A stretch of 64,000 bases of DNA from positions 52,266,001 through 52,330,000 of the forward strand of contig CM060732.1 of assembly GCA_030704615.1 (NCBI GenBank), in the 5' to 3' direction. The DNA is from Takakia lepidozioides. Taxonomy: Eukaryota > Plantae > Bryophyta. The translations under genes were made by a program, and so were the position numbers. Below are positions 1 through 58,636 of this stretch, in pieces. The first letter of the stretch is position 1. Each line of letters begins with the position of its first letter. The notes below the pieces were generated by a model, which did no database searches, was not told where the DNA came from, and worked only from the letters and a program-made list of their open reading frames with translations.

Positions 1-1688
1 ATAATATGGCTGAATGAAATGTGGTGTCTTGGAACGCAATGGCTGGCATGGTGGACCTTCTTGGTCGTGCAAGGCGATTAGATGGGGCAGAGGAATTTAT
101 AGTAGCAAAATGTCAATCCAACCAGATCCTAGGGTATGGAGGGCCTTGTTTGGTGCCTGCAAACTTCATGGAGATGTGGAGGTAGCAGAACATGTGGCGA
201 AAAGCATTGTTAGCAGGCAACAGCTTGTGTGATTACTATGCTGAGCCTTACTGGAGGGATGAACCAAAATGATGTAAGGACAGATGTCAGAAACTTGTGA
301 GGGAGCAGCTGCATTGAGGTTGTAATATGGTTTGTACATTTGGTATGGTAACGTTTCTATGCGTTTGCAGTGCGTGTGCAATCCTGGCAAAATGACAAAG
401 AGGTGCATGGTTGCATCGCCAAAGCTGGAATTGTACCAAATGTGATTCTGAACAATACCCTCATGGACATGTATGCCAAATGTGGGAGCAATGAGGATGC
501 GGAGGGAGTGTTCAACAGTATGGCTGACCGAGATTTGGTATCATGGAATGCCATGCTTGCAGGATATGCACAACAAGGGCGCAGGATGGAGGCCTTGGAG
601 ACCTATGAGCAAATGATGGGGGAAGGGGTGAAGTGCAACCACATCACGTTTGTGTGCGTTTGCAATGTTTGTGCAACCCTAGCAGCCTTGGAAAAAGGCA
701 AAGGGTGCATGGTGACATCATCAAAGCTGGACTTGTACCAAATGTCATTCTGGACACCGCCCTGGTGGACATGTATGCGAAATGTGGGTGCATTGAGGAT
801 GCAAAGGGAGTATTTGACAATGTGGCTGAATGAAATATGGTGTCATGGAATCCGATGATCGCAGGATATGCCCAGCATGGTTGTAATATGGAGGTCCTGC
901 AACTATTTGAAAGAATGCAAAAGAACGGCTTGAAGCCGGACAATATCACTTTATATGTGTTCTCTCTGCATGTAGCCACACTGGCCTACTGAATGAAGAA
1001 AGACGCTACTTCGATTCCCTGAGTCAAGATCATGGTGACACCCCAACAGTATAGCACTTTGGCTGCATGGTGGACCTTCTGGATGTGCGGGACAACTACA
1101 TGAGGCAGTGGACCTTATTAATAAAATGCCAATCAATCCAGATGTTGTGGTGTGCTTGGTGCCTGCAGAATCCATGGCAATGTGGAGATGGCTGAATGTG
1201 TGGCAACATCTATCCTCAAGTGAGATGAGCAGGATGCCGTGACTTATGTGTTGCTATATCAAATATCTATGCTGCAGCTGGCAGGTGGGATGATACTGCA
1301 AAGGTGAGAAGAATGATGAAGGTCAGAGGGGTTAGAAAGGAGCCAGATGACAAAGGAGCCAGATGACAAGTTGCATCCCAGAATTAAGGAAATCCATGCT
1401 GAGTTAAGAAGATTGTCTGGGCAGATGAAGGAGGCGGGGTATGTGCCTGACACACACTTTTTCTTGCATGATGTGGAGGAAAGGAATTTTCTCTTTGCCA
1501 CCACAGTGAGAAGCTGACCATTGGTTTTGGGCTGATTAGCACGACTCATCAAGAATCTTTGAGTGTGTGGAGACTGCCACACCTCCACCAAATTCATCTC
1601 AAAGATTGTTGGCCGAGCAATTGTTGTATGGGACGCTAACTATTTTCCACCACTTTGAAGATGGTGTTCTTGTGGTGATTACTGGTGA
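1..1688 (+). pseudogene. PLS-class PPR-E-DYW pseudogene (two partial tandem copies)
   Basis: Fragments with PPR motifs (NTLMDMYAKCG, VSWNAMLAGYAQQG), E domain (VWRALFGACKLHG) and a DYW remnant (HSEKL, VCGDCH, CGDYW-stop at 1686-1688). Many frameshifts and stops. Confidence 0.9.
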
Positions 1689-2370
1689 AATGATGTTTTC
1701 TTGGAAAGATGCTAGTGTCTTGCTTCATTCATTGATCTGTGTAGCTACTCAGACCATCCACCATTTCCTGATAGTGGGGTCTACCCGACATAGGTGGGAA
1801 GTCAGCCCACAATTGCACTTGACTGAAGGGGTGATTTTTGACTGATTATGGTGACATTGGATGGAAATCAGAGTGCTGTGCTAATTCTGGGTTTGGGTGG
1901 TGGAGCTTCTCCAAAGCTTGAAGATGGAAGTGAATATGAATTTTAATGAGATTGATGAGAGGGGTAGCCCTGTGCACAAGTTTGTTCAGCATCTTAAATT
2001 TGGACATGTTTGTTTGTTTCTTGTGGTGTGGCTTTGGATGGAGCCCTTGACGAACTTGCATGAATATTGTCAAAAGCTAGCCTTAACCCACCAAGATCCA
2101 ATCCCATGGTGGATGCTTGAAAGTTCATATAGTGAATGTAAGGGTATTTGGGTATGTTGTTATTGATTGGTGCCACTTGTGAAAGTTGAACATTGAAATG
2201 CAGATCCGCCATTTTTCTTCCAGAAAAGAACAAAACATGGGATCTCTGCATGTAACACCGTGGGGATGACCCACCTTTTTTTTTGTGAAAAATTGAACCT
2301 AGTTCTCAGAATTCGTCGCTAGTAGTGCGGAGCAACGCGAAGCCCTAGTTTTATTAAAATGGTCGCACAT

Positions 2371-14003: not shown

Positions 14004-14747
14004 ATGGCCATGAACACGCTAATGGGTGACGGGAATCGTAGAGATGAGCATACTACTAGTAGTAAAGCATCCGGGCGAAGGCCACCGGCACTCAAGATTA
14101 GTAAGGAGTCGCGCTCCATCATTCGGAAACCAGGATTTCCACCGCCCCGCATCATCCACACCTACTCGCCCACGATCATCAAGACCGAGCCCCATAACTT
14201 TATGACGCTGGTGCAGAAACTGACAGGCTCCGCCTACACAAGCTCAATCTCAATGTATGAGAATGCTAGCAGGGCATTCCCCTCTGAAATTATGACTGCC
14301 TGCCCGCCACCTCAGCTAGCGTCGGAATCTTCATCTTCTTCCACATCCGGCTCATGCGAGTCGGGCTCCTACTCTTCGTCAGAGGGAGCTAATCAAGATT
14401 GGCATTCATTGAGAGGTTACATGCCTGCGCACGAGAGTATTCCTGAAGGTAGCGCTGTGAAAGCCATGGGAGCACTGCTGTCACCCTTCACCTCTCAAGT
14501 CTTGGCAGCACTGCCATCGCCGGCTAGCATGGCATCGATGAATGATCTGCCACTATTGTCACCAAGTGCTTTGTACACAACTCGTGATCAGGGAGGTTTT
14601 CCAAAGTCACAGCAATTTAGAGAACCCCTCTTCTCTCCAATAATATCACAGTCTCCGGCAAACTGGTCTCGCTTCTCTGCCGCGTTTCCATCTCCAGGGA
14701 GCACAATTGCATTCAACGATATGGCTTTCATGCTCGACTCACAATGA
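14004..14747 (+). CDS. VQ-motif protein (MKS1/VQ21-like), 247 aa, single exon
   Basis: FMTLVQKLTG fits FxxxVQxLTG and is preceded by RPPALKISKESRSIIRKP and IIHTYSPTIIKTEP. Ser/Pro-rich C-terminus with many SP sites. Confidence 0.9.
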   Translation: MAMNTLMGDGNRRDEHTTSSKASGRRPPALKISKESRSIIRKPGFPPPRIIHTYSPTIIKTEPHNFMTLVQKLTGSAYTSSISMYENASRAFPSEIMTACPPPQLASESSSSSTSGSCESGSYSSSEGANQDWHSLRGYMPAHESIPEGSAVKAMGALLSPFTSQVLAALPSPASMASMNDLPLLSPSALYTTRDQGGFPKSQQFREPLFSPIISQSPANWSRFSAAFPSPGSTIAFNDMAFMLDSQ

Positions 14748-18997: not shown

Positions 18998-20654
18998 ATT
19001 CCTGTACCTCTCATGATGCAATTCGGAGACACGGCATATTGGATTTGGCTTATTGCAGATTCGTGGCCATACAGCCAATGGCGCCTTTGGATGTAGCAGA
19101 GAGAAGGGAGAAGGGCAGGGGAGAAGGGATCCACTTTAGTGAGCTCCTATAGTGGATTTATCTTAGTCTGTGTGATTGGGTCACTTGACAATTTCTCCTT
19201 GTACTCATACACTATGGGAGGAAACGACTTGGTATACAAGTATTTCTAGCAGCTTATAGGGAGAGGGCAAAGTTGTGGATAATTTTGGTAGAAGAGTCAA
19301 AGTGTACTTTGAGGTATCAAAGAGAGGAAAAGGTATCCATTTAAAAAAGACAGCAAGAGGTAATAATTGTGTATTCTTCTGGACCTTACAGCTGGGACAT
19401 ATCTGTGTCTGATGTAACCCCTTGGCTGTGGGGTTCTCACCTACTGGGTTGAAATCAACTAGATATACCAGAACTGTCTTGCACAGGCATCGACAATTCA
19501 GTTACAGGGCTGATGTAATGGTATTGGTATTGCACCAGGAAGAAAAATTGTCGAGGATGCACACCCTTGTGAGGCTGGGATTGAGTTTGGTTGATTTCTG
19601 CTCTTTTGGATTCCTCATAATGTGTTATTTGTGAATAGAATGTACTCATAAGACGTTGTTTGCCGTAGCCTTGTGGTATTTGTGAAAAGAGTGGATCAAT
19701 TGACTGTGCAGAACATCCATGGGCTAGAGAAGGAGGGGATGCCTCTGACATCCTTTTGGACATCTTGGTGCTTTCAAATATGCGTGAGTTCGTGAAGTGC
19801 ATCCGTCTGAAGCAAATTGCTTTAAGGGTAATCTAGTTTCCCTTATGTATCCATATGTAGGATATTACAAGTGCTTGGTTTAGGAGGTTAGATTTGACTT
19901 TGTTATTGTGATTCAAATCTTTATAGGAGGCGCCATGCCTCTGGGCTTGCTGTGGATGCCATAAAGGGCTAGGGGAAGTGTCTATTCTTTTCTGTTGGGT
20001 GCAGATCCATTTACTAGATTTCAAGCTCAGGAGCACCAATGAGATGCTGTGGGTTGATAGCTGCAAAAACGTGCGTCAACGGACGGGCGGTTGGAGAATC
20101 TGGAAGTAGCCAGGGGGAAGTATGTGGCTAGGCCTGGTGGGGGTCGTCGGGGCATTTCCAGTATGGCACTCCCTCCTCTTCAACAGATCCGCAAGTAGCC
20201 AGGGGGAAGTACGTGGCAAGGCCTGGTGAATGGGGATGGTCGGGACATGTCCAGTATGAGACTCTTCAACAGATCCTCCCAGACTTTTGAATTTCTTTTG
20301 CTAGGTGCAAAGGTGTCTCATTTAACTGTCATTCTTACAGACTATGTGCCACCTGTTGATATTCGAAGGAAGAGAGTCTTATATATTGCTGTGAACCAAT
20401 AGTTTCATCTCACATGGAGCAGAAAAGAAGTAGATTGGAGGGTGAGCAGGAAGTCACACCCAATTGGTTAGTTTTACATGGATCTTCTATTTGTTTTGTA
20501 ACCGAGTTGGTGCATTTGCTGTGAAAGTGCGCACCTGGAAGGGTGCCCAACCCAAAAACCTATGTTGCAAGGAGGCTGTCCTCATGAAGAGACCGTTCTT
20601 TGAAGTATTTAGGAGCTACTCAAGTCTGATTCTGACGAGTTTTCAGTATTGCAG

Positions 20655-22150
20655 GATGGCAGGGCTGAATCAGGCACAACTATCTGAACCATGCACCTCC
20701 ACCACAACCCCTACTATCCAAGCAGGGCCAAGAACGACTACATCTCGCTTAGCCATTCTTTCGAACATTTGCCGCGAAATCTTCATGTCCCCACATTTGG
20801 CATACATGTCAACAAGGGCAGTCTCCAGGATGATGTCAGGGACAATTCCTACTTTGATGATGTCAGCATGGACCTCTTTACCCTTTTCCAGGGCTGTCAG
20901 GCTAGCACATGCATTGACAATGAAAATGTAAGTCACCCTGTCAGGCATTACCCCTTCCTGTATCATTCACCCATACATCTCTAAGGCCTCCACACCCTTT
21001 CTGGTCATCCATTAGACCAAGTTCGGCTTCAAGCCTTCCTGTTGCATTTGTTGAAATAATTGCAGGGCCTCCCTAATACATCCATTGCTGAGCATACCCT
21101 GTGCCCACTCTTGTTGGGCCGTCTTGGCCAACACTTGATGGGCCTCCTTTATGCTCCTGCATTTGGCATACATATTGACCAGAGCCGTCTCCAGAATGAT
21201 ATCTGGCACAACTCCAGCTTTGATGATGTCAGCATGGATCTTTTTGCCCTTCACTAGGGCTCCCATGTTGGCACATGCATGTAGAATAGAAGTGAACATG
21301 ACCATGACCGTGCTGGGCGACAACCCTTCCCCTATCATCTGCTCACACATATCAAAGGCCTCCCTACCAAACCCATGCTTGGCATATGCTGTTATCATTG
21401 TACTTCACGTAAACATGTCTCGTTCAGCCATCTTGTCAAAGACTTGGCGTGCATCCACCACACTCCCACACTTTGCATACATGTTGACAAGGGTGTTGAG
21501 TAGAAAGATGCTTGATTGAACCAGCCTTGGCCATGCCTCTATTGGCTTCAGGGGGAAGAGACCTCAAATCCCACGAACCAGAGTAGTTGATATTGGCTCC
21601 GGCCATGGAATGCTGTAATTGCAGGATATGCTCAGCATGGGTGTAATAGGGAGGCCAAGGAGTTATTTGTGCAAATGCAACAGGAAGGCGTCAAACCAAA
21701 TGTGGTGTCATGGACTGCAATGATTGCAGGATGAGTATGGTAGGGAGGCTTTCACAAGCTATACGCAAATGATACCAGAAGGGGTATCACCCAACAGGGT
21801 CTCTTTCATTTGTGTTCGTAATGCGTGTGCAAGCCTGGCAGCCCTGGAAAAGGGCAAGGATGTCCATGCTGACATGGTCAGAGCTGGAATTGCACCACAT
21901 ACATTCTGGAGACTGCCCTTGCTGACATGTATGCAAAATGCGGAAGCATGAAGGATGCGCGTCAATCATTTTGGCTGTATGGTGGACCTTCTTGGCCGTG
22001 CAGGGTGCTTGGATGAGGCAGAGAAGTTTAGGGTTAACCAAACCCCAATGGAACCACATGCTGCTGTGTGGGCCTTGCTTGGGGCCTGCAGAATTCATGG
22101 CAACGTGGAAGTGGCAGAACGTGCAGCAAAATGGCTTGTCGAGTGGAGAT
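20655..22150. pseudogene. Scrambled PLS-PPR pseudogene with internal inversion
   Basis: The plus-strand exon start cag|GATGGCAGGGCTGAATCAGGCACAA matches 49470. PPR repeats then run on the minus strand (about 20735-21530), followed by plus-strand PPR, S2 and E remnants (21605-22150) with frameshifts. Confidence 0.85.
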
Positions 22151-33253: not shown

Positions 33254-34783
33254 CTACAAGCGAATGACATAAACGCGACTTTTCAGTATGAATTTGTGGA
33301 TACGGAATCCAGGCAGAAGGACGAGGGTTACTCTTGGTGGGGTTTCTTCCTCTTCAGTCGGCCCCTCGCCATCCCCCTCTGGATCTTCCGAGACAATACT
33401 CTCCATGTACTCAATGTCGAATGCTGCATTTCTGCCCACTCGGATCACTCTTGCGCATGGCTCAAACGAGAACGTCAGTTTGTGCAACATCCACACGCTC
33501 TTGGCCAATCGGAGGAAGGAGTCACGCAGTCGACCGTCTTGTCTGGTCTCCGTGGGCTCCCCGCTGGATTGCTTGGTGCTTTCTTGGATGGTGTCGAGCT
33601 CCTTGCCGAAGAGCCTTAGAAACTTTTGATTACAGAAACTGAGGAAAGCTTCTCTGTACTCGGCCGGCATGTCAGAAGCTTTCGAGAAGGCCTTGTACTC
33701 CTTGAAGAACGCCGCTGGAAGTTGATCCGGAGGTGGAAACTTGGCCCGCTGATTCTCATCCCCAAAGTCTTCCAGTTCGAAGCCAGAGAAGAAGATGGAA
33801 GACACATAAGCTTGGTAACCAAACTTGACATGAGCTTTTCTGGAGAAGGGGATATCAAGCCACTGTCCGGATTCAGACACGTTGATAGTTCCGCTGACGG
33901 TCATGAATTCCTTCGTGAAATCCGATAATTCAAGCTGCACCTTTTGGAAGGCGCCTTCAAGGAGAACAGGAGTAGCAGAAGAATCGGGAAAGGAGCCGCT
34001 TGTGACTCTCTCGTTCGCTATTTCCCTTTCAAGTAATTTTATTTGCTCCTGAAGTCTCTCAGCCCTTTGCTCTGCTAACCCCGCGTTGTTGTGGTCTGGA
34101 TATCTTTCTTTGCCCTGCTGACGCGCTGAGTTCAGCTCTCCACGGAGGTGATCAATCTCACTCTCGAGTCTGCTGATCTCCATGTGGCCACGTGCAATTT
34201 CCGTTTGCTTCACTGCCTCCACGCAATTCATACACGGCCTTCCTTGGAGTTCGTGATGGTCGACAGATCCACTAGGCTGTTTGAAAACGCCCCTGAACCG
34301 CGCTGCAAAGGATGCGAGAAAAGCTCCAGGTTGCTGGCCGGTTCGGATATGCTCGTAAGACGCAGTGACCTGATCGTTCTTGACAGTGTCTGAAAAGTTC
34401 CGACTCTCACCGATACCATGGATATTTGATGATTGCTCATGCCGATTATGCTGACGCGCTGAGTCCAGCTCTCTACGGAGGTCATCGTTCTCACTCTCGA
34501 GTCTGCTGATCTCCTTGCCACGTGCAACTTCCATTTGCTTCAATACCTTCGCGCAATTCATACACGGCGTTCCTTGGAGTTCCTCCTGGTCGACAGATCT
34601 ACTAGGCGGCTTAAGAACGGCGCCCTTGAACCGCTTTGCAAAGGATGCGAAAAAAGCTCCAGATTGCTGGGTTGGGATATGCTCGCAAGACTCAGTGACC
34701 TGATCGTTCATGACAGCGGACTCTGAAACATTCCGACTCTCACCGACCCCATGGTTATTTGATGACTGTCCGAGAGGATCCAT
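33254..34783 (-). CDS. Coiled-coil protein with GIL1/IRK-interacting-like C-terminal domain (GrpE-like pattern), 509 aa
   Basis: Two 111-aa N-terminal repeats, each ending PCMNC plus coiled coil. The C-terminus FLRLAKSVWMLHKLTFSFEP...FDIEYMESIV...VTLVLLPGFRI...KSRVYV is typical of the plant GIL1/IRKI family. Confidence 0.85.
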   Translation of the reverse strand: MDPLGQSSNNHGVGESRNVSESAVMNDQVTESCEHIPTQQSGAFFASFAKRFKGAVLKPPSRSVDQEELQGTPCMNCAKVLKQMEVARGKEISRLESENDDLRRELDSARQHNRHEQSSNIHGIGESRNFSDTVKNDQVTASYEHIRTGQQPGAFLASFAARFRGVFKQPSGSVDHHELQGRPCMNCVEAVKQTEIARGHMEISRLESEIDHLRGELNSARQQGKERYPDHNNAGLAEQRAERLQEQIKLLEREIANERVTSGSFPDSSATPVLLEGAFQKVQLELSDFTKEFMTVSGTINVSESGQWLDIPFSRKAHVKFGYQAYVSSIFFSGFELEDFGDENQRAKFPPPDQLPAAFFKEYKAFSKASDMPAEYREAFLSFCNQKFLRLFGKELDTIQESTKQSSGEPTETRQDGRLRDSFLRLAKSVWMLHKLTFSFEPCARVIRVGRNAAFDIEYMESIVSEDPEGDGEGPTEEEETPPRVTLVLLPGFRIHKFILKSRVYVIRL

Positions 34784-35287
34784 TGAGGCAGCAATCTCAG
34801 CAATCTCTCTTGCTGCTATGGACCGAAGGGATGCACTGAACCAAACACAGAATGCAAAGGAGCAATGTAACCAGCTTGCGATGAAATGCTCCCTGCATGC
34901 ACAACATTCACAGCTCTCCGATCCAGCTCAGAGGTAGATCTACAGCGCGCACCTTCTCGGTCTATATCTGTAATAGGAACAAAACATGCTCATTAATCTA
35001 CTGTTTTGGTTTACTTACGCCATAGATGTGCAGCAGTCGGTAGCTATTTCTAGAATCAAAATAAACTAGTTAATGCAATGCAACTGTGTCGGCTGGAATC
35101 AAAATAAACTAGTTAATGCAATGCAACTGTGTCGGCTAGAATCAAAATAAACTAGTTAATGTGATGCAACTGCAGTTTGGTTGACAATGCATTCTGGACG
35201 TAACACACAGTCCACATGCATTCAAGACTTGCACACCTTGGCACCCAGCGACTTCCTGTCCCTCTTTTTCGACAATAGCTCTGAAGA
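34784..35287. promoter_or_regulatory. Shared divergent promoter region with a 43-bp tandem repeat x3
   Basis: 504 bp between opposing ATGs. Unit ctagaatcaaaataaactagttaatgcaatgcaactgtgtcgg at 35050, 35093 and 35136. The paralogous region 23048-23130 has two copies. Confidence 0.7.
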
Positions 35288-38084
35288 ATGGCGACGGCCG
35301 CAGGTGGTTCAGATGCAAGGGTCGTGGCGAGTCTGGACTTCGGGACAACTTTCTCAGGATTTGCTTCAGTCCACACATCCGACCCATCGAAAGTCTGGAC
35401 ATTCTATGAATGGCCTGAGCAAGCAAGCGGCGGTGGAAGACCTTACTGCAAGACCCAGACTTCGCTGTACTATATTGAAGACAAGGAGGGAAAGCTGAAG
35501 CTTGAGAGTTGGGGCTGGCCTGCTTCGGTCACTTACACGAAGGTCTGTTCCACAGGGAAATCGAAGCGAGTTCCTAGACAGGAAGTCGAGCTGGAGAAAT
35601 TGAATCAAGTTCCTACTAAGGAGAACGATCTGGAGAAATGGAAGCAGGTTCCTACTAAGAAAGTCGATCTGGTGGAGAGGAAGTTACTCAAACCTCAACT
35701 AGCAGGCTCTGAAGTTCCTGCACAGGATGTCGAAGTTGGTAACCTGGTAACGCATGTCAAGCTCCATCTAGTAGGCTCCGAGAATGAACCGCTGTCGGCA
35801 CAAGCTTTGCCCGACGGCTTGACAACGAGGACCGTGACAACAGAGGAGTCACAGGAAGTCGTGCTGGAGAAATGGAACCAAGTTCCTAGACATGAAGTCG
35901 AGCTGGAGAAATCGAAGCAAGTCCCTACAGAGGAAGTCGCTCTGGAGAAATGGAAGCAAGTTCCTAGAAAGGCAGTCAAGCTGGTGGAGAGGAAGTTACT
36001 CAAACTCAATCTAGCAGGCTCCGAGAATGGACCGCTGTCCACACAAGATTTGCCCGACGGCGTGAGAACTGGGACCGTGATAACAGAGCAGTCACAGGAA
36101 GTCGTGCTGGAGAAATGGACGCAAGTTCCTACACAGGAAGTCGAGCTGGAGAAATCGAAGCAAGTTCCTGCAAAGGGAATCAAGCTCGAGAGGAAGTTCC
36201 ACAAACTTCATGTCGCAGGCTCTGAAGTTCCTACACAGGATGTCAAAGTTGGCAAGCTGGTAACGCTTTTCAAGCTTCACCTAGCAGGCTCCGAGAATGG
36301 ACCGCTGTCCGCACAAGCTTTGCCCGACGGCTTGACAACTAGGACCGTGATAACAGACTATCTGCGAGAAATATCCAAGTTTATCATGGTTCATCTCAAG
36401 AACCGCTACGGAAACCAATTAAGCATGCAGGAAGTCCAGTGGTGCTTAACTGTGCCTGCAATTTGGGACGACCAGGCCAAGCAGCGGATGAAATCATTTG
36501 CTGAGGAGGCGGGTCTAGTTCGAGGTTCTAGCAATGACATTGCGGCGAGCCCGCATCCTCTTATGATAGTCCTGGAGCCGGAGGCAGCGGCTGTGTACTG
36601 CCTCCAGAATTTGGAGGGCTTGTCATTTCGAGAGCAAGACAAATTCCTGACTGTCGACATTGGTGGAGGTACTGTCGACATAGTCGTTCATGAAAAGCTC
36701 CAGAGCGGTGACGCAAATCCTCGGGTTCGTGTTTGTCCGAATCTTCGTGAATGTTTGTTCTGGTCCTGATTGAAAGTAGTGTTTGTTTGAGACCGCAGCC
36801 TGCTCTCTCAACAGATTTTGATAAGAGTATGTCTTCTCGTCGTCTGTCCTTGCTTGTTGCGGAAACAAATAGATCCATACTAGAATTAGAACGTAGGATG
36901 CGGAGACCATGCAGAAGCTGGGATGTTGGCCAATGTTGTTCTCTCCAATCACTTTTAAGTTAGTATTACAACGGCAGAGCCTGTGACGCCAAGTGCTGCG
37001 TTCCCTCTCATAAGGAGGCTTGATGTTACATGGTGGATCGAACCAAGTTGACCTCCACATGTGTGTATCAATTGTGCAGTTGAAGGAGGTGACAAGGAGC
37101 ACAGGCGGTCTGTGCGGGGGAACGTATGTTGACAAGAACTTTCTGCAGCACCTTGTCGAGCGAATTGGCTGCCTACGCTCCTTCTTCGAGGAGAATCCTT
37201 TGACGTTGCTCTCGACACTTCGGTGGTGGGAGGGCATCAAAAGCACGTTCGATGGAACACAGAACGCAACCTTCGACACATCCGCCAAACTTGCCAAAGC
37301 CTGGGAGGTCTACGACAGCTACCAACGACCAGGAGCAGCAGCTGAACATGGCTATGATGAGGTGGAGTTGACGCAGAGGGACTTGATGAGCATATTCGAT
37401 CCGGTGGTGGAGCAGATCATTAAGCTCATCAAAGATGCACTTGATCAGGTCTGGGGGGAGGTGAAGGTCATCATGGCCGTTGGAGGGTTCTCTGCTAGTC
37501 CCTACTTGATGAGTAGATTGAAAACGGAGTTCCAGGACATCGTTGGAGGGGTTGTGAGCCCGCCCGATCCTGGCAGCGCGGTTTGCGTGGGTGCAGCAAT
37601 GCTGGGCGTAGCTCCCCAAGACATCATTCGTTCCCGGATCTGCAGAAAGACATACGGTCAGCGTATATGTAGAGAGTTTCTTCATGGAGATCCGGTTAGC
37701 CAGCAGTTCACCAACGACGACGGCTATTTGATGTGCGATCACGTCTTTAGTGTTTTCGTCGAAAATGGAGATGAGGTCCCCATCAATCACTCAGTCACTA
37801 AACTACTCTTTCCAAGCTATCATGGCTCGGAAACAATGCTGATCGAAATTGTCAGTACAAACAAAAAGAGTCCCAAGTACACATGCGAGGAAGGCGTAGT
37901 GGAGGAAGGGGAATTCGAACTAGACATGTCTGCAGGAATGCACCTGGACATGGAAAGAGAAGTGGAAGTGACGATGTTGTTTGGTCGGTCCAGCATTGAG
38001 GTGACGGCCAAGGGTGTCAACTTCGACGCAAGTGGAGGAGCTGAGAACGCTATTCCCGTGGCCTTCAGTGGGGGCAACGACTAA
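35288..38084 (+). CDS. HSPA12-type atypical Hsp70 (copy 2), about 813 aa, 2 exons
   Basis: Exons 35288-36724 and 37080-38084. Same ATPase motifs and intron position as copy 1, with a differently arranged repeat insert. Confidence 0.9.
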
Positions 38085-43621: not shown

Positions 43622-46600
43622 TCACCAGTAATCCCCACAAGAACAATGCCCATCTTGGAAGTGGTGAAAGCGGTGGGGATCCCGCACAACAATTGCTCGC
43701 CTTACAATCTTAGAGATGAACTTGGCAGCTGTGTGGCAGTCACCACACACTCGAAGGTTCTTGATGACATGGAGAGGCGTCCCAGAGGGTGTGCTGATGA
43801 GCCCAAAAGCAATGGCCAGCCTCTCACTGTGGTGGAAGAGAGAAAACTCCTTTTGATCCTCCTCCACATCACGCAATACAAAGCGTGTGTCAGGAACATA
43901 GCCGGCTTCCTTCATCTGCCGAGACAAATTCTTCAGCTCAGCATGGATTTTCTCAATTTGTGGATGTGATTTATCTTCTACTACGAATGCATGCACCTGG
44001 TTGTCCACGTCAATACAGCTGCACCCTGGCTCCTTTATCACACCTCTGTCCTGCATCATTTTTCTTACCTTTACTGTATCGTTCCACCTGCCAGCTGCAG
44101 CATATATGTTAGATAACAGCACATACGTCCCTGCATGCTGTGGATCCCAATTGAGAAGGCATTTTGCTGCACGCACTGCTAGCTTCACGTTGCCATGAAT
44201 TTTGCAGGCACCAAGCAAGGCCCCCCACACCGTAGCATCTGCTTCGATTGGCATTTTGTTGATAAAGTCCTCAGCCTCATCCAATCGCCCTGCACGGCCA
44301 AGGAGGTCTACCATACAGCCAAAATGCTCCACTCTTGGAGTGAGGCCATGCTGTTCACACATAGCATCAAAGTAGTGACCACCTTCATCCACTAGGCCCA
44401 CATGACTACATGCAGAGAGAACTCCTATAAAGGTGATGTCATTCGGCTCCAAGCCTTCCTGTTGCATTTGTTCAAATAGTTGCAGGGCCTCCCTACCAAA
44501 CCCATGCTGAGCATATCCTGCGATCATCACGTTACTTGAGACCACATTTCGTCGGGCCATATTGTCAAAAACTTGACGAGCCTCCTTCATGTTCCCACAT
44601 TTCGCATACATGTCAGTGAGGGCATTCTCCAAATTAATATATGACACAATTCCGGCTTTGACAATGTCAGCATGGACCTGCTTGCCCTTTTCTAGCACTG
44701 CCAGACTGGCACATGCACTCAGAACACAGAGAAATGTGATCATGTTAGGGGTCACCCCTTCCCGTATCATTCGCTCATACATCTCAAAAGCTTTTGAACC
44801 AAAACCTTGCTGAGCATATCCTGAGATCATTGTACTCCATGAGACCACATCTCGTTCAACCATATTGTTGAACACTTGATCTGCATCCTTCATGTTCCCG
44901 CATTTGGTATACATGTTCACAATGGTATTCTCCAAATCAATCGAGGATCTAATTCCAGCTTTGATGATGTCAGCATGGACCTCTTTCCCCTTTTCCAGAC
45001 TTGCCAGGCTGGCACACGCATTGAGAATGCAAATGAACGTGACATGGTCAGGTGTCATGCCTTCAAGTACCATTTGCTCATAGATATTGAAAGCCTCCAT
45101 GCCATACCCATGCTGAGCATATCCTCCAATTATTGCATTCCATGAGACCACATCTCGGTCAGCCATATTATTGAAGACGTGATGTGCATCCTTCATGTTC
45201 CCACATTTAGCATACATGTCAATGAGGGCAGTCTCAAGAATGAAATTTGGTGCAATTCCTACTTTGATGATGTCAGCATGGATCTGTTTGCCCTTTTCCA
45301 GGGCTGCTAGGCTGGCACATGCATTGAGGACACCAACGAACGTGACCACGTTGGGTGTCACCCCTTCCTGTATCATTTGCTCATAGATCTCAAAAGCCTC
45401 CCTGCCACATCCATGCTGGGCATATCCTGCAATCAGTGTACTCCATGAAACCACATTTCGTTTGGCCATTTTGTCAAACACTAGATGTGCATCCTTCATG
45501 TTCCCACATTTGGCATACATGTTCATGAGGGCAGTCTCCAGCATGATATCAGATGCCATTCCAGCTTTGAGGATGTCAGCGTGAACCTCTTTGCCTTTTC
45601 CTGGGGCTGCTAGCCTAGCGCACGCATGGAGAATGCAAATGAATGTGACCTTGTTGGGTGTGACCCCTTCCCATATCATCTGCTCATACATCTCGAAAGC
45701 CTCCCTACCACACCCATGCTGAGCATATCCTGCGATCATCACACTCCATGAGACTACATTTCGTGGGACCATATTGTCAAACACATATTGCGCATCCTTC
45801 ATGCTCCCACATTTCATATACATGGCAGCAAGTGCAGTCCCCAGAACGTCATTTGGTGCAAAACCAGCTTTGGTGATGTCAGCATGGATCTCTTTACCAT
45901 TTTCAAGGGATCCTAAGCTCCCACAGGCCTTGAGAATGGAAATGAATGTGACCCTGTCTGGGGTTATCCCTTCCCGTTGCATTTGCTCATACATCTGGAA
46001 AGCCTCCATACCAAACCCATTTTGAGCATATCCTGCAATCATTGCGTTCCATGAAACCACATTTCGCTTAACCATGTTGTCAAATACTTTAAGTGCATCC
46101 TTCAAGCTCCCACATTTAGCATACATGCTAACAAGGGTATTCTCTAGCATAATATCTGGTGCAACTCCAGCCTTGATGATGACAGCATGGACCTCTTTAC
46201 CCTTTTCGAGAACTCCTAAGCTGGCACATGCCTTGATAATACTAATGAACATGACATTGTTGGGCATGATCCCTTCCAATATGATTTGCTGATAGATCTC
46301 CAGAGCCTCCCTATTACACCCCTGCTTCACATATCCTGCCATCATTACAGTCCACGTAAACAAATCTCGTTCAGGCATTTTGTCAAATACTTGGCGTGCA
46401 TACGTCATGCTCCCGCATTTGGCATACATGTCAACAAGGGTGTTGAGCAAAAAGAGGTTTGGCTTGAATCCGCTTTGGATGATGTGGGCGTGCACCTGGT
46501 TTCCCATTTCAAGGTTTTCAATTTTGATGCACTCCCGCAACAGACAGAGATAAGTACTTGAGTCTGCCGAATTGCTTTGTTTGCTCAACACTTGCAGCGC

Positions 46601-47919
46601 CTCTTTCAGCTTTCCGTACTTACACAGTGTCCTCACCTGCCCACAAGAGCTTGAAGAGTTTTTGTTGACTCCATCACCAGATTGTGCTCGACCTTCTATC
46701 ATGGCAGTGCTAGTTGCTTGCACCCAAAGAGGTTCCCACCAGGCCTCGTTTGTTTGTATTTGTATATCATCTCCTGGATTTTTCTGCAAACACCATCAAT
46801 GAACACCTGAGCAGCCAGCACTTCAACCACAGCCTGGCAACGTACAATAGCAGATTTTTCTTTAATTGAAGGGACAGGAGGTACAATCCAGTCCACAAAA
46901 CATCACAATGCTGCTTCAGTCACAGGCCCTCCTTACAAAACTCTTCACATTCTATTTGAATGAATAAGGCCTCACCTTCTCAAACCTACTCTCTCGTAGT
47001 GAAGGATATGAGAACTCCTGCCAGAGTCCTTCTTTGCTCCTGGCTGGACCTGTGGACAAAAGAGGTAGAAGAAAATGAAAATTTTGTCAACTTTCGATTG
47101 CTTGGTACCATTAAGAGCACCCGGGATTAGACCTACATCTTTACCAGCTCCTCTTTGACCTCAGTTTCTTTGAGGAAGGCTCTCCATAGAAAGTCACCTG
47201 TCTTTCTTCAGGCTTCCCGTCACTCTCTCTCTCTCTCCCCTCCCTTAAACACACTGTGACTGGGAGTACAATCACACTCACAACTGTCACACCTATGTCG
47301 CATTGGGGGCTACACCAGCAGAGCTATCTGTATCGTCCCTTAATCCACACCCTAGTGCGTAGAAAGGCTCAGGAACTGCCCTCAACAGCCAATGTTCGCA
47401 GGGAGTGGTCAATGAGCACACTCACTCTGTCCTTATCCTTCTTCAGTGCGACTGGCTCTTGTTGCTCTTCACTGCTATACATTTAGGAGTGATCTCAAGT
47501 TGAACGTTACGAAATTAGGCAGGAATTTAGTGGCATGGTTATGCGTGAGCCTGAGTGTCAATTGTCTCCTGTATAACCATTGAGTGAAACCTATAGTTCT
47601 GCTGAAAAGGGGCAATGTGGACACTGGATCGCTTCGACACAAATAACTTAAAAGACCAACAAATGCACAAGATTTCCACGTCTGTACCTTCCTGCGACAT
47701 CCCTGGAGTTTTGGGAGGAGTCATGGCCATCACTCGGATCATTCTGGGGTCCGGCATTGCCAAGCTGGGTACCGGTGTAAGCTCTGCAGCCTGACCAGTC
47801 ATCAATCTGCTGCATGATGTGAGGCCCCCTACCAGCTCACCGCCAGGAGAACCCAGGAACGTGGGCATCTCCTCTCCCTGCACGCTCAGGGGAGCTCCAC
47901 AGCTTGCTGAAGCTGCCAT
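43622..47919 (-). CDS. PLS-E-DYW PPR RNA-editing factor with eroded N-terminal PDF-like motif, about 1155 aa, 3 exons
   Basis: Exons 47919-47688, 47049-46976 and 46783-43622 splice in frame (GT..AG). Seven S-motif triplets plus P2-L2-S2, E domains, PG box PGCSCI, HSE...CGDC deaminase signature and terminal DYW. Confidence 0.9.
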
Positions 47920-48061
47920 CGCCACACGACACTCATCCTCCCTCTACCTATTCATCTAAAATTGGTAGAGATCAGCCACCCAAACACAAAGGATCGAGCA
48001 CGGGAATAGGTCCCTTTCGTCTCCACCAAATCTCGCTAATCGTCAATTTTTCTTGTGGCTC

Positions 48062-48525
48062 ATGTTGAGCTTCTACTCTTCGCTCACTGTCTCAGGGATG
48101 GCAGCGTGCTCTTCTTTCAATGAAAAGGCGGGAAGCCTCACATTATGCAGCGGATCAGGGGCCCAGGTTGTGGAGCTGAATTCGCCAATCAGATTGCCAA
48201 TGCCAGGGCCGAGGTCCTTGCACGTGATGGGGCTGGAGCAGAACAGAAGAAAGGTATGCATATGAAAATATTTACGTGTTTTGTTTGGGTCTCTGTGCGT
48301 CGGAGTGAGGCTCAGCTCCTGTAATATCTGAAAAAGACACCTCCTCTCGCCATTGGTTTCACGGAGACATAGAGTCCTTATTTACGTGGCTTGCTTGTGG
48401 CCAAAGCCATGGTGGCGGGGGCGAAACCGAAACCCGATGGAAATGTCGAAGTTGCAAAGCATTTGAACTCTCTCCTCACTGTACAGGGCTGTTTATCATA
48501 GTTGTGGCACAAATTGCTACTGTGA

Positions 48526-48563
<38 letters not shown>

Positions 48564-51500
48564 TTAATTTTATATAAGCCCTGGCCCAGTCTTCTCACCA
48601 AGACCGAGGTCAATTGGGAGCTATTATACTTTGAAGCACTTGCCCTCAATAGATTCTGAAGCAATCAGAAGTTGGCGAAGTTCTCACGCTCTTGCAGTTC
48701 TTGCTCGTAGATCAAGCCATGACCATAGAGTGGCTCTGGCAGGAGTTCTTCTCAGATCCTTCACAGTGGTGGGATAACAGCTTTGCAAAGGTAAGTCTAT
48801 CGTCATAAGGACTCCATAAAGTTTGTCTAGGAGGGCTTCTGACTGAAGCTGGCAACATCATGTTTTGTGGAGTGGAATTGTCCCAAATTGTCTAGATTAT
48901 AACAATATTATTCTGCATTATCAGTGGGTTCAGTAGGTTGTTCTACCTCGTGGCCAGTATATGAAAGCAGGTTGGTCGAGCTTGTTCCCTGTAATTTGAA
49001 AGATGTCCGGAGCTTAGGTGGTTGTAGCATGATCTTTCTGAAGCTTGGTAGCTATGGTTGCTCAGCTGCCTACTGGTGATATTTGCAGCAAAATCGAAGA
49101 TCACCAGACTTAATACATAAGCGCACAAAGGAGGCCATTTGGATTGAGGGTTGGTTGAATCCTCCCTGGGTGACAGAAAAGCTAGCTGCCATGGTGCAAA
49201 GTCCAGCACGATGTGGTGACAATTCTAAGATGAATGTACAACATGGAGGACCAGCCCCAGAATACAATGGGTATTGTTTTCGTGATCATTTAAGGGCTTA
49301 CACTTAAAATAAATGTTACAGATTATTTCAGATTGAATGCAGTGGTTTTGTAACCCTGTTAGCATGTAGGCTGTTCTCAGTGAGGGGTGTTTCTTCGAAA
49401 CATCTGGGAGCATTGGGACATATTATGTGAATATGATGTAAAAGTTTGTAACTAAATTGAGTCATGCAGGATGGCAGGTTTGAATCAGGCACAGTTGTTT
49501 GTTGGACATCAGACTGACAAGATGGGTATCACCTCCACCGTCACCCCTGCTTGTGAAGGAGGACCAAGAGAGGGAGTCAACATGTCTGAGAGTGTGAGAG
49601 CCCTCTGTAAGGCAGGACGACTGAAAGAGGCGCTCCATGTTTTGAACCAACAAGGCATCCAGGTGGACTCGAGTACTTATATCTGTCTCTTGCAGGGGTG
49701 TGTCAAGCTGAAACGCCTCACAGAAGGAAAGCAGGTGCATGCCCACATTATTAGAAATGGATATATACCAAACATCCATCTATTTAACACCCTTGTCAAC
49801 ATGTATGTCAAGTGCGGAAGCATAATGGATGCTCGCCAAGTGTTTAACAAAATGCCTGAACGAGATATGATTACTTGGACTATGATGATGTCAGGATACG
49901 CCAGGCATGGGCATGATGAGGAAGCTTTCAAAACCTATGATCAAATGCTATCTGCAGGGGTGACGCCTGATAGGGTCACATTCATTTGCATTCTCAATGT
50001 GTGTGCCAACCTTGGAGCGCTGGAAAAGGGCAAAGAGGTCCATGCTGACATCATCAAAGCGGGAATTGTGTCATATATAAATTTGGACACTGCCCTTCTT
50101 GACATGTATGGGAAATGCGGGAGCATGAAGGATGCATGTCAAGTATTCTACAGTATGGCTCAACGGGATGTGGTCTCCTGGAATGCTCTGATCACAGGAT
50201 ATGCTCAGCACGGAAGTGGTAGGGAGGCTTTGAAGATGTATAAGCAAATGCAACTGGAAGGGGTAAGCCCGGACAGGGTCACATTCATTTGCGTTCTCAC
50301 TGCATGTGCAAGCCTAGGGGCTCTGGAGAAGGGTAGAGAGGTCCATGCTGACCTCAGCAAAATTGGACTTGCGCCAGACATCATTCTGGAGACTGCCCTT
50401 GTTGACATGTATGCCAAATGCGGGAGTATGAAGGATGCGTCTCAAGTGTTCAACAATATGGCTCAAAAAGATGTTGTCTCATGGAGTGCGATGATAGCAG
50501 GATATGCTCAGCAGGGTTATGCTCGGGAGGCTTTTGAGATCTATGAGCAAATGCAGCGGAAAGGAGTGACACCCAACAGGGGCACATTCATTGGCATTCT
50601 CAATGCCTGTGCCAGCAAAGGAGCTCTGGACAAGGGCAAAGAGGTCCATGTGGACATCATCAAAGCTGGCATTTTGTTACATCTTAATTTGGAGACTGCC
50701 CTTGTTGACATGTATGCCAAATGTGGGAGCATGAAGGATGCGCGTCAAGTGTTCAATGATATGGTTCACCAAGATTTGGTCGCATGGAATGCCATAATTG
50801 CGGGGTATGCGCAGCATGGGGATGGCAGGGAGGCCCTCCGACTATTTGAACAAATGCAAGAGGAAGGATTGCAGCCAGATCGTATCACCTTTGTATCTCT
50901 TCTATCTGCATGTAGTCACGGGGGCCTAGTGGGTGAAGGCCGTCACTATTTCAATTCCATGAGTCGAGTTCATGGGCTCATTCCCACGGCAGAGCATTTT
51001 TGCTGCATGGTGGACCTTCTTGGCCGTGCAGGCCGATTGAATGAGGCCGAGGACTTCATTAGCAAAATGCCAGTCAAACCGGGTGCTTCTGTGTGGAGGG
51101 CCTTGCTGAGTGCCTGCAGAAATCATAATAATGTTGAGGTGGCAGAACGTGCAGCAAAAAGCCTTCTCAAGTGTGATCCACAGCAAGCTTCAGCCTATGT
51201 GCTACTATCCAACATCTATGCTGCAGCTGGCAGGTGGGACGATAGAGCAAAGGTGAGAGAAGTGATGCAGGACAGAGGTGTCAGAAAGGAGCCAGGGCGC
51301 AGCTGCATTGAAGTAGAGAACCAGGTGCACACATTTATAGTAGACAAAAAGTCGCATCCACAAATTGAGGAAATCCATGCTGTGCTGAAGAGCTTGTATG
51401 TGCAGATAAGGGAGGCTGGGTATAAGCCTGACATGGGCTTTATATTGCATGATATGGAGGAGGAGCACAAGGAATCTTCTCTTCTTCACCACAGTGAGAA

Positions 51501-51699
51501 GCTAGCCATTGCTTTTGGACTGATGAGGACGCCCCTCGGGACGCCTCTCCGTGTCATCAATAATCTGAGGATGTGTGGTGATTGTCACACTGCCGTTAAG
51601 TTCATCTCAAAGACTGTTGGGCGTGCAGTCAGTGTCCGGGATGGTAACCACTTTCACCACTTCCAAGATGGAGTTTGTTCTTGTGGGGATTATTGGTGA
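48062..51699 (+). CDS. PLS-E-DYW PPR RNA-editing factor with N-terminal OSB-type PDF motif, about 898 aa, 4 exons
   Basis: Exons 48062-48253, 48698-48790, 49089-49270 and 49470-51699 splice in frame (phases 0, 0, 2). [19 protein letters not shown]|[28 protein letters not shown], then four S-motif triplets, E, HSE...CGDC and DYW. Confidence 0.9.
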
Positions 51700-54600
51700 G
51701 ACGATCAAGATGTGTGAAAGACGGCACGCTGCCACTCACAGCCGTGAGGGTGTAAAACTTATAAATTTGTGATGCGTTTTGTCAGCAGATCTGCAATTCA
51801 AAGAATGAATCTTCCATTAAATGCAACAGCAAGCACTGGAACTTCCTATAATCTGCCCAAGCACCATGATCAAATTAAACCGCAACACTCAAAAGTCACG
51901 GACATCCTTATCCCAGAGGAGTTGTCAGCAGATTGAAGGTACTGTAGGCCTCCGTGAAACCAGGAGTTTTGGGTATCAAAGTTCTGCACGAAAAAGATCT
52001 GAACAAGAATCCTAGGAATATGATACCCTGAACTGCCTAGGTGTTTTTGCAACATTGACCATAGAGATAACCTTTGACCTCAGAACATCCATGACAACTG
52101 ACCTTTGAATCATGTCACAAGCTAAAACCATCTACCACCATCTGAAATTTCAATGTTCGCCTGGCCCATCCCTATTCCAGCATCTAGCCAGTTTTTAGCC
52201 CATGCGGCAGAGGGTGGAAAAATAGATACAACTCATGTAATATAGTAAAATTGGAGGAGTATCAAATGCCACTACCTCCTCAACACGCAGTCGGCAATTT
52301 GTTTTGGGCCCCACTCGCCATTTTTTAACCAATGCTTCTAGGCTGTAGCACCTGCCGCTTTCCATGCAGGATGCTCCTGGCAGCCTGCCACCACACTGGG
52401 AAGTTCAAAGCCAACCAATTCAGGGAGTGGTCGCCAGGCCTGCTCCATATCGCGGTGGATATTTAGCTCCAGACCTTTGGGCAGATGACATTGGATTCCT
52501 TTGTTCAAGGTCTACAAGTTTTGTCCAGATAACAGTAAAGAACAGCTGCAACCCTTCTGTGGTAGAGCAGGAAGCTAGGGATGAGATCAACGATACTGCA
52601 AATAATTTCTTCTGCAGCAGCCAATGCAAGTCACAATTTCACCTTCAGTAAAGCAAGTTTGTTGTGGAATTCTTCAGCCACACCCCGATGGAGGTACTGT
52701 CACTTTGCCGAGACTTCAGCCCAGAGTTTACGGGTGCAGCTGTCTCAGATATTCCCTACTTGTCATATCACTAGACAGATTCTTCACATTTCATTGCAGT
52801 CAGAACGTTGAGAGACGCCCTCAGAGCACAAATTGTCACCCACTCTGGTAGCAATCAAGAGGGATTACAGGGAATCACTATTCATCATATATTTAGAACA
52901 ACTTATGGGCACATATGTAGTTGATTTGGCCCTCGGACAAGCCTGACTTGGTCTACATGCAATGCCATGGAGCAATTGCCTCTGATCTGTAGTTAGAGAA
53001 AGGGCTTCACTTCACACGTTCCAGCAATGTAGTATATGTCATTCTGTCTTTCTTTGATTACGTGGTACTTGTGTGATGGGTACAGTATTTTGCATATTCG
53101 AACTTTAAACTCATGCATTGATGTAACCTTCAGATATAAAAGCTCTCTACTATCTACTCTGCTACAGATATGGGAGGTGATTCACAGATCATAAGTTGAT
53201 CGTCTTGCTTGGCACGATCAATGTGAAAGTTCCATCAACGCATGGCACCATCGTGAGGGTTGTGCAAGCATCAAATTGATTGTGAGATTCAGAGGCTGCA
53301 TGCTATTTAATCTAAAGCCTTTTTCCGTCTTCTGTTTGGACCGCGCACTAAAGGAGCAGATGCAGGAGAGGAGACGTCTTTTGTGCAGTGTTTGTGGGCC
53401 CGTGATTATGAAGACTGCTCAGATTCGTGGTCCTCCTCATCTCTGGGCATTCCAGACGGGCAATCCTCTGAGCAATGATGTGCTAAATTCTTTTTTGCCG
53501 TCCGGGGGGCCCATGGTGCGCGGACGGGAAGGATCTGACCACACAAGAGGTAGGGCCACTTTAGACTACGGTCCAAGACCGAGACCAACTCAAAATGCAA
53601 TGATCCTTTGTTTGGTCACATTGGCTTTATAGCACTACGGACCAGGACCAAGAAAGTTAGGAGTGACATGGCCCCTAACTTAGTGGCATGGATTATGGCG
53701 GGAGATTCTTGGTCTCCCGACCAAGAAACTAAGGACCAATTCTCGGACCGGAGCAAGTATAAAAATCTATGTTTTTTTTCTTCAAACGATGGTGACCGTC
53801 TGTTAGAATCAATCTCAAATGTTTGACGGAAGATGATACACCTCATTTTTAGTTTCTCGGTCGCGGTCTTGGTCTTGGTTCCATGGCCTTTATAGACACC
53901 CACTTTGGTCCCTAGGATAGTAATATTTTAATATGCATCTACGGACAGGTTTTTGGTCTTGGCCCTTGTTTTTACGCCTTATGTTCGCGTGTTGACCAAA
54001 CCCGTGGTTGGACGTGAAGTGTGTTAGCACCTTTTTTTTTTCTTTTTTTCTTTTTTTATTAATTAAAGGGGGACAGGGGCCCTTTTAATCAAATTAAATG
54101 AAACAAAGGTTCACATTAAGGTTCTAAGTGTTAGCACTTAGAACCCCTTTTTGCCGCCCATCTTTTTGTTTTTTGTTTTTTTCATCTAGAACTAGTGTGG
54201 CCTATGATGCTGTTGACCACATATTATACCATCGTTTTACTAAGTATATGCCACATTGTAGGGCCCATCCCGGAAAGGGGGCACTATTAGACCAAGGTAT
54301 ATGCCACACTGTAGGGCCTCCCCTCCAAAAGGGGCAGTAGCTGCAAGGTGAAGTGGCTTTTAGTTAGCTATGGCCGGAGTCTTCTCTCTCTCTCCCATGC
54401 CACAGTGTAGGCCCAAAAGTTATGGAACCACCTCAATGCACACCTACTCATTGAGGGCTTTTCAGCTGTATTAAGCTCAGAAACAGGGTGGAGGCCTTGC
54501 TATTTTTCATGAATTTTTGGTGACAAAAAGACTGGAAATTCAATATCTCCCACACCATAGGTCGACAAATTAAACCACCTCGATGCGCCCCTACTAATTG

Positions 54601-57224: not shown

Positions 57225-58636
57225 ATGAATGATAGCCCGAGTTTGGGCTCGTGGGGAGGGGCTTGGAATCTTAGAACAGGTAATTCTCCAATAAAGCCCA
57301 CCTGGGTATCTATACGTAGACTCAGTTCCACCTTTGTGCATCTCTCACCTAGTGCAGTGACCTGCGAGTCATCTGTCTTCCAGATGAGGTTTTTGGCTGA
57401 GCAGTTTTTTAACATGTATAGTGTCAAAAGTGTTGCAGGGAAAGTACTAGACGATGCACAACCGCAGGTTTAGCCGTGATGTTCGCAATATATGTCCTGG
57501 TTCAGCAGATTATCAGAAAACGTCAACGTGCAAAATTGAGGTCTGCTAATCAAATTGGAAATCTCAAAAGCATTAAAGAGATCTTCAACTCAGCTGTAGC
57601 TCTTGGTACGGGAGTTCCTTTGAATGTATTCTCTTTGAAAGAGCTGGAAAAGGCAACCAACAGCTTTGCCGATGACCTCAAACTTGGCAGCGGTGCGTTT
57701 GGGACAGTTTACCGAGGAACGTTTCGGGATGGAACTGTGGTGGCCATTAAAAGGAGCAACCATGATGAAAGCGTGCATTCTACACAACAGTTTTTGAATG
57801 AGATTAGTATTTTGTCGCAGGTCAATCATCGAAATTTGGTGCGGCTGCTAGGCTGCTGCCTGGAAACGGCAGTCCCAATACTGGTTTATGAGTACATTCC
57901 AAATGGAAACCTGTATGAGCACTTGCATGGAAAGCTGCCCCGTGGAGAGGTCCAGTTGGACTGGAGGAGAAGGTTGCAGATTGCAGTTGAGACAGCTGAG
58001 GCGCTGATGTATTTGCACTCTGCAGCCAAGCCACCAATCTATCACAGAGATGTGAAATCATCGAACATCTTGCTGGACGAAAATCTTACTGTTAGAGTGG
58101 CTGATTTTGGGCTTTCTCGTTTCATCCCGATGGAAGCTACCCATGTCTCGACTGGGGTGCAAGGAACGCCTGGCTACATAGACCCCGAGTACTTTCAGAC
58201 CTACCAACTGAACGATAAAAGTGACGTCTACAGCTTTGGTGTGGTTTTACTAGAAATCCTCACTTCTCAAAAACCACTCGATTTTTCACGGGAGTCTGAG
58301 GCTGTGAACCTTGCGACTTTCGCATCCATGATCATGCTGGAAAGGGGGTGTTTGGAGGAAATAGTGGATGGGTATCTTAAAACAGCTGCTTACTGGGACC
58401 CAGAAGCAGCGCAGAGTGTGGCACAGTTAGCTTTGATGTGCTTGGCGTTTCGACGACAGGACCGGCCATCCATGAAAGAGGTGGTCGAGGAGTTGCATCG
58501 GATCCGAGGACCGATCAGGACGCAAGGATTTCAGTTCATTGAAGGTGTTCACACCTGTCCGGAGGAGTTCATGCTGGAAATACTTGATGATGAAATGGAA
58601 AGTTGTGCAGTTTCGAATACAAGCAGCTCGAGTTAG
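57225..58636 (+). CDS. WAK-like (WAKL14/15-type) RD receptor kinase with minimal ectodomain
   Basis: Exon 57225-57279 joined to 57468-58636. Hydrophobic GLAVMFAIYVLV followed by RKRQR. Kinase motifs GSGAFG, VAIK, IYHRDVKSSN, DFG and GTPGYIDPEY. The first exon is inferred. Confidence 0.8.

Follow-up and report, generated by a model that had tools for sequence, protein, structure and literature searches.

The forward strand of the 64,000-nucleotide stretch of Takakia lepidozioides contig CM060732.1 that was analysed here (the window) reads, from the sequence and the list of its open reading frames (ORFs), as a four-exon gene between positions 48062 and 51699. With a probability of roughly 0.7, this gene encodes a PLS-class PPR-E-DYW organellar C-to-U editing factor that carries one PDF module of the type known from OSB proteins, specified by an ancient intron-split cassette and most likely acting as a nucleic-acid clamp. 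PPR-DYW proteins are the RNA-editing enzymes of plant organelles and the basis of programmable RNA base editors, and we know of no accessory nucleic-acid-binding domain at the N-terminus in their described architecture. The first-pass annotation of this DNA had proposed such a fusion, with exons at 48698–48790 and 49089–49270 joined to the PPR exon. The canonical splice sites and the in-frame join can be read directly in the sequence, the peptides quoted for the two exons are correct, and the structural claim, that a PDF module of the OSB type precedes an intact PPR-E-DYW deaminase in the same reading frame, is supported. All searches, alignments and counts given below were done exon by exon.

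The module is encoded in two halves. Exon 2 (48698–48790; 31 codons, phase 0, ttgcag/gtaagt borders) holds the first, and exon 3 (49089–49270; 60 codons plus 2 nucleotides, tttgcag/gtattg borders) holds the second together with the start of a low-complexity linker. Between them, intron 2 (48791–49088; gtaagt...tttgcag, phase 0) splits the module at WWDxRxxK/xxxxxPDF. A Pfam scan of exons 1–3 returned no family at E ≤ 10; Pfam has no PDF model, and profiles were therefore built locally. The same N-terminal motif was found by a pattern scan in many Diphasiastrum complanatum and Calypogeia fissa proteins among the 120 best relatives of the PPR ORF, and a word search with the motif region, restricted to proteins of 165–525 residues, returned PF00436 (SSB/OB) proteins (E ~1e-17, 61–66% identity) along with Sphagnum PPR proteins. 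One of the PF00436 matches, from Linum perenne, is named 'Protein OSB1, mitochondrial' (P0125). Four PDF motifs of PF00436 proteins (P0121 twice, P0123 and P0125) made up an OSB-only profile, which was run on all 2663 six-frame segments of the window. It matched exon 3 at hidden Markov model (HMM) positions 21–55 (E 1e-10) and exon 2 at positions 2–20 (E 4.6e-7), so that the two matches abut as complementary halves, on one strand and in the correct order. The lack of a match to the OSB motif would have spoken against the proposed fusion, but both exons matched; with a broader PDF profile the values were 1e-13 for exon 3 and 1.2e-10 for exon 2.

In an alignment (A2) of 34 rows, made of 32 reference modules (OSB and PPR-linked) and the two exons, exons 2 and 3 are 45–50% identical by column to the OSB modules and 48–63% to the PPR-linked ones. 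The PDF signature of about 50 residues (W..FF..P..WWDNR..K......PDFKHK.T.EALW.....P.WV) is recognizable in the window gene, and homology of its module to OSB PDF motifs is shown at the level of sequence. With OSB proteins the gene also shares the predicted fold of the module and the phase-0 intron within the motif. However, OSB proteins have an N-terminal OB/SSB-like PF00436 domain, a C-terminal PDF motif and no PPR tract or deaminase, whereas in the Takakia gene the module lies N-terminal to a PPR-E-DYW body, reads PDL and WWDNS at two of its landmarks, and is accompanied by no OB domain (exons 1–3 as given above; exon 4 is PPR-E-DYW). The gene is therefore not an OSB, and shares with that family the PDF module only.

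The intron within the module allows a comparison of gene structure, for which public proteins were mapped onto their own loci. It is a phase-0 intron that follows the Lys of WWDxRxxK and precedes PDF by five residues. An intron at the same position and in the same phase was seen in two angiosperm OSB genes, from Linum (L001) and Orobanche (L004), and in PPR genes of Calypogeia (L002), Sphagnum (L003 and L006) and Diphasiastrum (L005). In the Diphasiastrum gene the next intron is also equivalent to intron 3 of the window gene (49271–49469; gtattg...catgcag); in both genes the acceptor ahead of the PPR exon reads catgcag, and their three-part exon layout is the same. The arrangement of PDF-PPR genes, with the module N-terminal to the PLS PPR tract and a phase-0 split after WWDxRxxK, is thus found in the window gene. 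The shared phase-0 intron is strong evidence that exons 2 and 3 are genuine and were inherited together as a two-exon cassette, and it indicates that transfer of this cassette between OSB and PPR genes took place at the DNA level and not by retrocopying. By its intron the PDF cassette would be datable as a mobile unit of two exons. Early in the history of land plants this unit was probably placed ahead of a PPR gene by shuffling or duplication, and it then expanded with the PLS-PPR family.

The remainder of the protein is encoded by exon 4 (49470–51699, stop codon at 51697–51699), which comprises the linker, the PLS-class PPR tract, the E1/E2 motifs and the DYW deaminase. At its acceptor (catgcag/g) the G at 49470 completes a GGG (Gly) codon ahead of the ATG of the PPR ORF (49471–51699, 742 codons), which is in frame with exons 2 and 3. 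Pfam models matched PF01535 in 12 stretches, PF13041 in 9, E_motif (E 4.5e-20), Eplus (E 2.9e-4) and the full length of DYW_deaminase PF14432 (positions 1–93 of 93, E 8.2e-40). A closer inspection of the translation showed the PG box (KEPGRS), HSE, CGDCH and a terminal CSCGDYW, so that the intact HxE/CxxC deaminase site asserted in the first-pass annotation is confirmed. The PPR repeats, the E motifs and the complete DYW domain with HSE, CGDCH and PG box identify an intact PLS-class editing factor of the C-to-U type, and its product is predicted to be targeted to an organelle and to edit specific C-to-U sites. Identity of the PPR ORF to its 120 best public relatives is 47–53%. Known PLS-class PPR-E-DYW factors, for example those of Physcomitrium and Funaria (Funaria PPR77, P0005), share with the window gene the PPR tract, E1/E2 and a complete DYW domain with HxE, CxxC and PG box. 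In described factors of this class, in contrast, the presequence is followed directly by the PPR repeats.

The fold of the module was predicted with AlphaFold2 on alignment A2, the first row of which is a Diphasiastrum module, so that the canonical form and not the Takakia copy was modelled. The model (predicted local distance difference test score, pLDDT, 90.4; predicted template modelling score, pTM, 0.75) is a compact helix-strand-strand-helix unit, with helices at residues 2–12 and 50–60 and strands at 17–19 and 32–34. The intron site falls in the basic variable stretch between the two strands, which appears to be the stretch for which length variation among OSB proteins (motif positions 19–30) is described in PMC13393729. 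Four Streptophyta clusters of the ESM Atlas, one of SSB and three of PPR/DYW proteins, have the same fold, with template modelling (TM) scores of 0.86–0.89 and root-mean-square deviations of 1.2–1.5 Å over 61–62 residues. No solved structure resembling the model was found (best E 6.7 with Foldseek against the PDB, best Z 3.1 in the VIA wide search), which is weak evidence for a domain so small. Two clusters of hypothetical phage proteins (Uroviricota; TM 0.64–0.71 over 58–60 residues) and one Streptophyta cluster of 332-amino-acid hypothetical proteins (TM 0.71) in the ESM Atlas also resemble the model. The phage resemblance is uncorroborated in BFVD, where the model had no match (best E 0.98), and no conclusion on the origin of the module is drawn from it.

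A PDF profile was run over the 120 nearest public PPR proteins and found the module in 25, namely 19 of 28 from Diphasiastrum, both of those from Calypogeia, the single one from Sphagnum jensenii, one of six from Adiantum (its model is cut off within the motif) and two JGI entries. With the same profile the module was absent from all 46 seed-plant matches (Ginkgo 0/29, Cryptomeria 0/15, Taxus 0/1, Durio 0/1) and from Ceratodon (0/3) and Funaria (0/1). The HMM census of PPR proteins called for in the first-pass annotation was thus carried out among these 120 nearest proteins, with positives in seed-free plants and none in the 46 seed-plant matches. The architecture recurs in liverwort, Sphagnum, clubmoss and fern, and is represented by D. 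complanatum entries with the prefix O6H91_, C. fissa P0030 and P0033, Sphagnum P0097 and P0127 and Adiantum P0029, none of them named or described as such. These proteins differ from the Takakia gene in having kept the canonical WWDNR and PDFKHK; some carry the module twice or three times in tandem (P0037, P0043 and P0028), and some have no DYW domain. The similar N-termini in moss PPR proteins to which the first-pass annotation pointed are borne out in Sphagnum, and occur also in Calypogeia and many Diphasiastrum proteins. The notion of a special fusion, in turn, is not supported, since the window gene is one member of a large family.

Three public PPR models, P0007, P0029 (Adiantum capillus-veneris) and P0068, begin inside the motif, from profile positions 23–26 onward, which shows that annotation pipelines miss the first half-exon. 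Two short 'hypothetical' models with a PDF motif only, P0124 (186 amino acids) and P0136 (197 amino acids), look like PDF-PPR genes cut short. No paper describing the PDF-PPR architecture was found, and no paper on the 'PDF motif' was found that links it to PPR proteins, in a search outside which subscription-only literature lay. A 2026 survey of the OSB family (PMC13393729) used HMMs for the OB-fold-like domain and for the PDF domain and never mentions PPR; a 2026 kingdom-wide survey of editing factors (PMC13386178) never mentions OSB or PDF, and the architecture is not described in a review of Physcomitrium PPR proteins (PMC9459714). This family would be missed by surveys that ask for OB and PDF domains together (PMC13393729), or for hallmark editing domains only (PMC13386178). 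The window gene belongs, as an atypical case, to a large and apparently undescribed variant among PPR editing factors.

In the mechanism that we propose, the module would be placed between a probable presequence and the PPR tract, carried on a low-complexity linker of ~70 residues. In a PPR tract bound to RNA the N-terminus points to the 5' side of the target, and a flexibly tethered N-terminal single-strand binder would thus sit 5' of the recognised sequence. There the module would most likely serve as a sequence-independent clamp for single-stranded nucleic acid, which could raise non-specific affinity, keep the target RNA unfolded, or anchor the factor at the nucleoid through single-stranded DNA (ssDNA) or nascent transcripts, while the PPR tract would give site specificity and the DYW domain would deaminate. 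Such a function for the module in PPR proteins is suggested by analogy with OSB: in PMC6963530 and PMC4166229, both citing Zaegel 2006, the PDF motif of AtOSB1 is said to suffice for ssDNA binding (PMC6451138 is a further second-hand source for the Zaegel 2006 claims on OSB). Maize PPR4 (PMC9459714) offers a parallel by analogy only, having a generic single-strand-binding domain N-terminal to a sequence-specific PPR tract; its domain, however, is an unrelated RRM, and the protein is a P-class splicing factor with no deaminase. Nucleoid tethering, substitution for editing cofactors and action on ssDNA, which the first-pass annotation listed as possible roles of the module, are speculation.

Several observations, beginning with those on transcripts and on the start of the gene, weigh against this reading and are taken here together with the alternatives they bear on. 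Transcript data came from two runs of the same organism, as Logan contigs whose RNA nature is a guess, placed on 47900–51800 (3901 letters). Over exon 3 and stretches of exon 4 (e.g. 49487–49632) there are exact-match contigs at a depth of 10–25, and depth is 0–1 in intron 2 and most of intron 3. On the PDF exons the summed contig depth reaches hundreds to thousands, against about zero in the flanking introns, a height reached because contigs of many paralogues (at least 90% likeness) pile up there. One contig (record 3 of X1, 262 nucleotides) matches 49087–49269 with 0 differences, and 38 and 41 further letters at its two ends leave the genome. The two extra bases on the left and the missing one on the right are bases common to the exon and intron ends (..AAAG/..GCAG and ..TGG/G), and the contig therefore leaves the genome at both predicted exon-3 splice sites. 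No row for the junctions 48790/49089 or 49270/49470 is listed among the contigs, and none of them is shown spanning a junction. The confirmation of the junctions from transcripts is thus partial, with the exits at both splice sites and the uncovered introns in its favour, and the splicing together of exons 2, 3 and 4 is supported but not demonstrated.

Exon 1 (48062–48253) is putative and rests on sequence logic: an ATG at 48062 opens a frame of 64 codons that runs to a GT donor at 48254 and enters exon 2 in phase 0. Its peptide is Ser-rich, with few acidic residues, and is a candidate organelle presequence; it does not resemble the N-termini of 32 proteins with a PDF module and has little or no contig cover (bins 48031–48292), a hole that proves nothing. 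An alternative start codon lies within exon 2 (ATG at 48719). The putative intron 1 (48254–48697, GT..AG) contains a compound (GT)n(GA)n microsatellite at ~48524–48562, and reads seem to be cut at 48512–48573. If exons 1–3 were a small independent gene, an upstream ORF or an untranslated region that never enters the PPR protein, no junction-spanning read would be expected, and none was seen; the frame of exon 3 stays open to a stop at 49305–49307, so that an unspliced product is conceivable, and short PDF-only models do exist, though they resemble truncated PPR models. Frames and phases nevertheless agree at both junctions, four other plant lineages have annotated full-length fusions that share this exon layout, and the exon-3 contig runs its 41 letters past 49269 in non-intron sequence, which together make this explanation extremely improbable.

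The sequence of the module itself gives more reason for doubt. The Takakia copy retains 20 of 24 near-invariant columns, including all the Trp, Pro and Asp core residues, but carries R→S (WWDNS), F→L and K→I (PDLIHK) and L→I, and the columns of R→S, F→L and L→I do not vary among the 32 reference modules, whether these are from OSB or from PPR proteins. Even the name-giving Pro-Asp-Phe triplet reads P-D-L, where Phe is present in all 32. The motif quoted in the first-pass annotation therefore stands as a profile match, with its 20 retained columns, and fails at WWDNR and PDF as literal strings. The F→L change is conservative and hydrophobic, and the homology is not in doubt; nevertheless, with three universally conserved residues replaced, the binding competence that had been assumed for this copy becomes more doubtful, and the clamp is perhaps weakened in it.

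This is the setting for the main rival for the Takakia copy, in which the PDF exons are under relaxed constraint or non-functional, and the protein starts at the ATG at 49471 or bears an inert N-terminal appendage, the gene losing its module as its neighbours have done. Besides the four substitutions, it would account for an ATG directly after the exon-4 acceptor, with an in-frame stop 18 nucleotides upstream, and two neighbours fit it. The divergent head-to-head paralogue at 43622–46789 (reverse strand) keeps an intact 1055-amino-acid PPR-E-DYW ORF. Upstream of that ORF, 46880–47103 (reverse strand) is homologous to exon 2 and its intron flanks, but both the acceptor AG and the WWDN core are lost there ('EGLWQEFSYPSLRESRFEK') and a second PDF half-motif could not be detected; this looks like a decaying module ahead of a still-open editing-factor ORF. 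A broken PPR paralogue at ~20.6–22.1 kilobases (kb) has kept the exon-4 acceptor and start (cag/gatggcagggctgaatcagg) at 20655 and continues as PPR-like pieces in both orientations (20736–22145, to ~22.1 kb), and ~600 nucleotides upstream of it there is only a decayed second half of the motif (20017–20070, forward strand; 'DFKLRSTNEMLWVDSCKN', E 0.003–0.006). Two paralogues in the window have thus lost the module, one of them with an intact PPR-DYW ORF, so that the module is dispensable for at least some family members. The window copy and its two neighbours form a short series that leads from a module of intact appearance to decayed remnants; the module is gained and lost within the family, and the window copy may be drifting. 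Against loss of function in this copy stand the open frames of both exons, six of six canonical splice-site dinucleotides, the intact Trp, Pro and Asp core, and the exact contig ends at both exon-3 splice sites with uncovered introns, and we regard the relic explanation as unlikely.

A further PPR-E-DYW-like stretch was seen at the start of the window (347–1694, forward strand), its DNA ~70% identical to 50277–51705, so that four or more family members are clustered in the window.

The main functional rival takes the PDF unit of PPR proteins as primarily a protein-protein interface, serving self-association or contacts with OSB-coated nucleoids or with partners in an editing complex. It would suit a small, Trp-rich, compact fold with no solved relative, the tandem modules of some public members and the net charge of the Takakia copy, which from its peptide is near zero, and AtOSB2 is reported as a tetramer in PMC6963530. 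The sole experimental statement, on the other hand, is the ssDNA binding of the OSB1 motif, and the conserved basic stretch (R..K...K.PDFKHK) between the aromatic residues fits nucleic-acid contact; a docking role is therefore improbable as the primary one. The same literature also limits the clamp that we favour: in PMC4166229 and PMC6963530, citing Zaegel 2006, OSB1 and OSB2 are said to prefer ssDNA over double-stranded DNA or RNA, a poor fit to a simple RNA clamp, and as ssDNA binding is reported for OSB PDF motifs only, binding by PPR-linked modules would follow by analogy.

In a further-reaching reading, PDF-PPR proteins would be an ancient, large and so far undescribed class of editing factors in seed-free plants, in which an ssDNA-binding module couples C-to-U editing to the nucleoid, at the non-template strand, R-loops or replication intermediates. 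This we consider decidedly unlikely. Were it true, editing would be co-transcriptional and would not need MORF-type helpers, or the DYW deaminase would even reach single-stranded organellar DNA, and seed plants would have lost the module at the time when MORF/ORRM cofactors arose.

Elsewhere in the window, a gene for a VQ-motif protein (14004–14747, forward strand), a GIL1/IRKI and atypical Hsp70 gene pair (33254–38084) and an ORF for a WAK/RLCK-like protein kinase (57476–58636, forward strand; best public identity 58–60%, with Sphagnum, Selaginella and Ceratodon) were noted.

The conservation of an OSB-type module on many editing factors from liverwort, Sphagnum, clubmoss and fern, and its absence from the 46 seed-plant matches, raises the question of how such factors find and hold their substrates where MORF-type helpers are scarce, and, as a second question, whether their editing may be tied to nucleoids.

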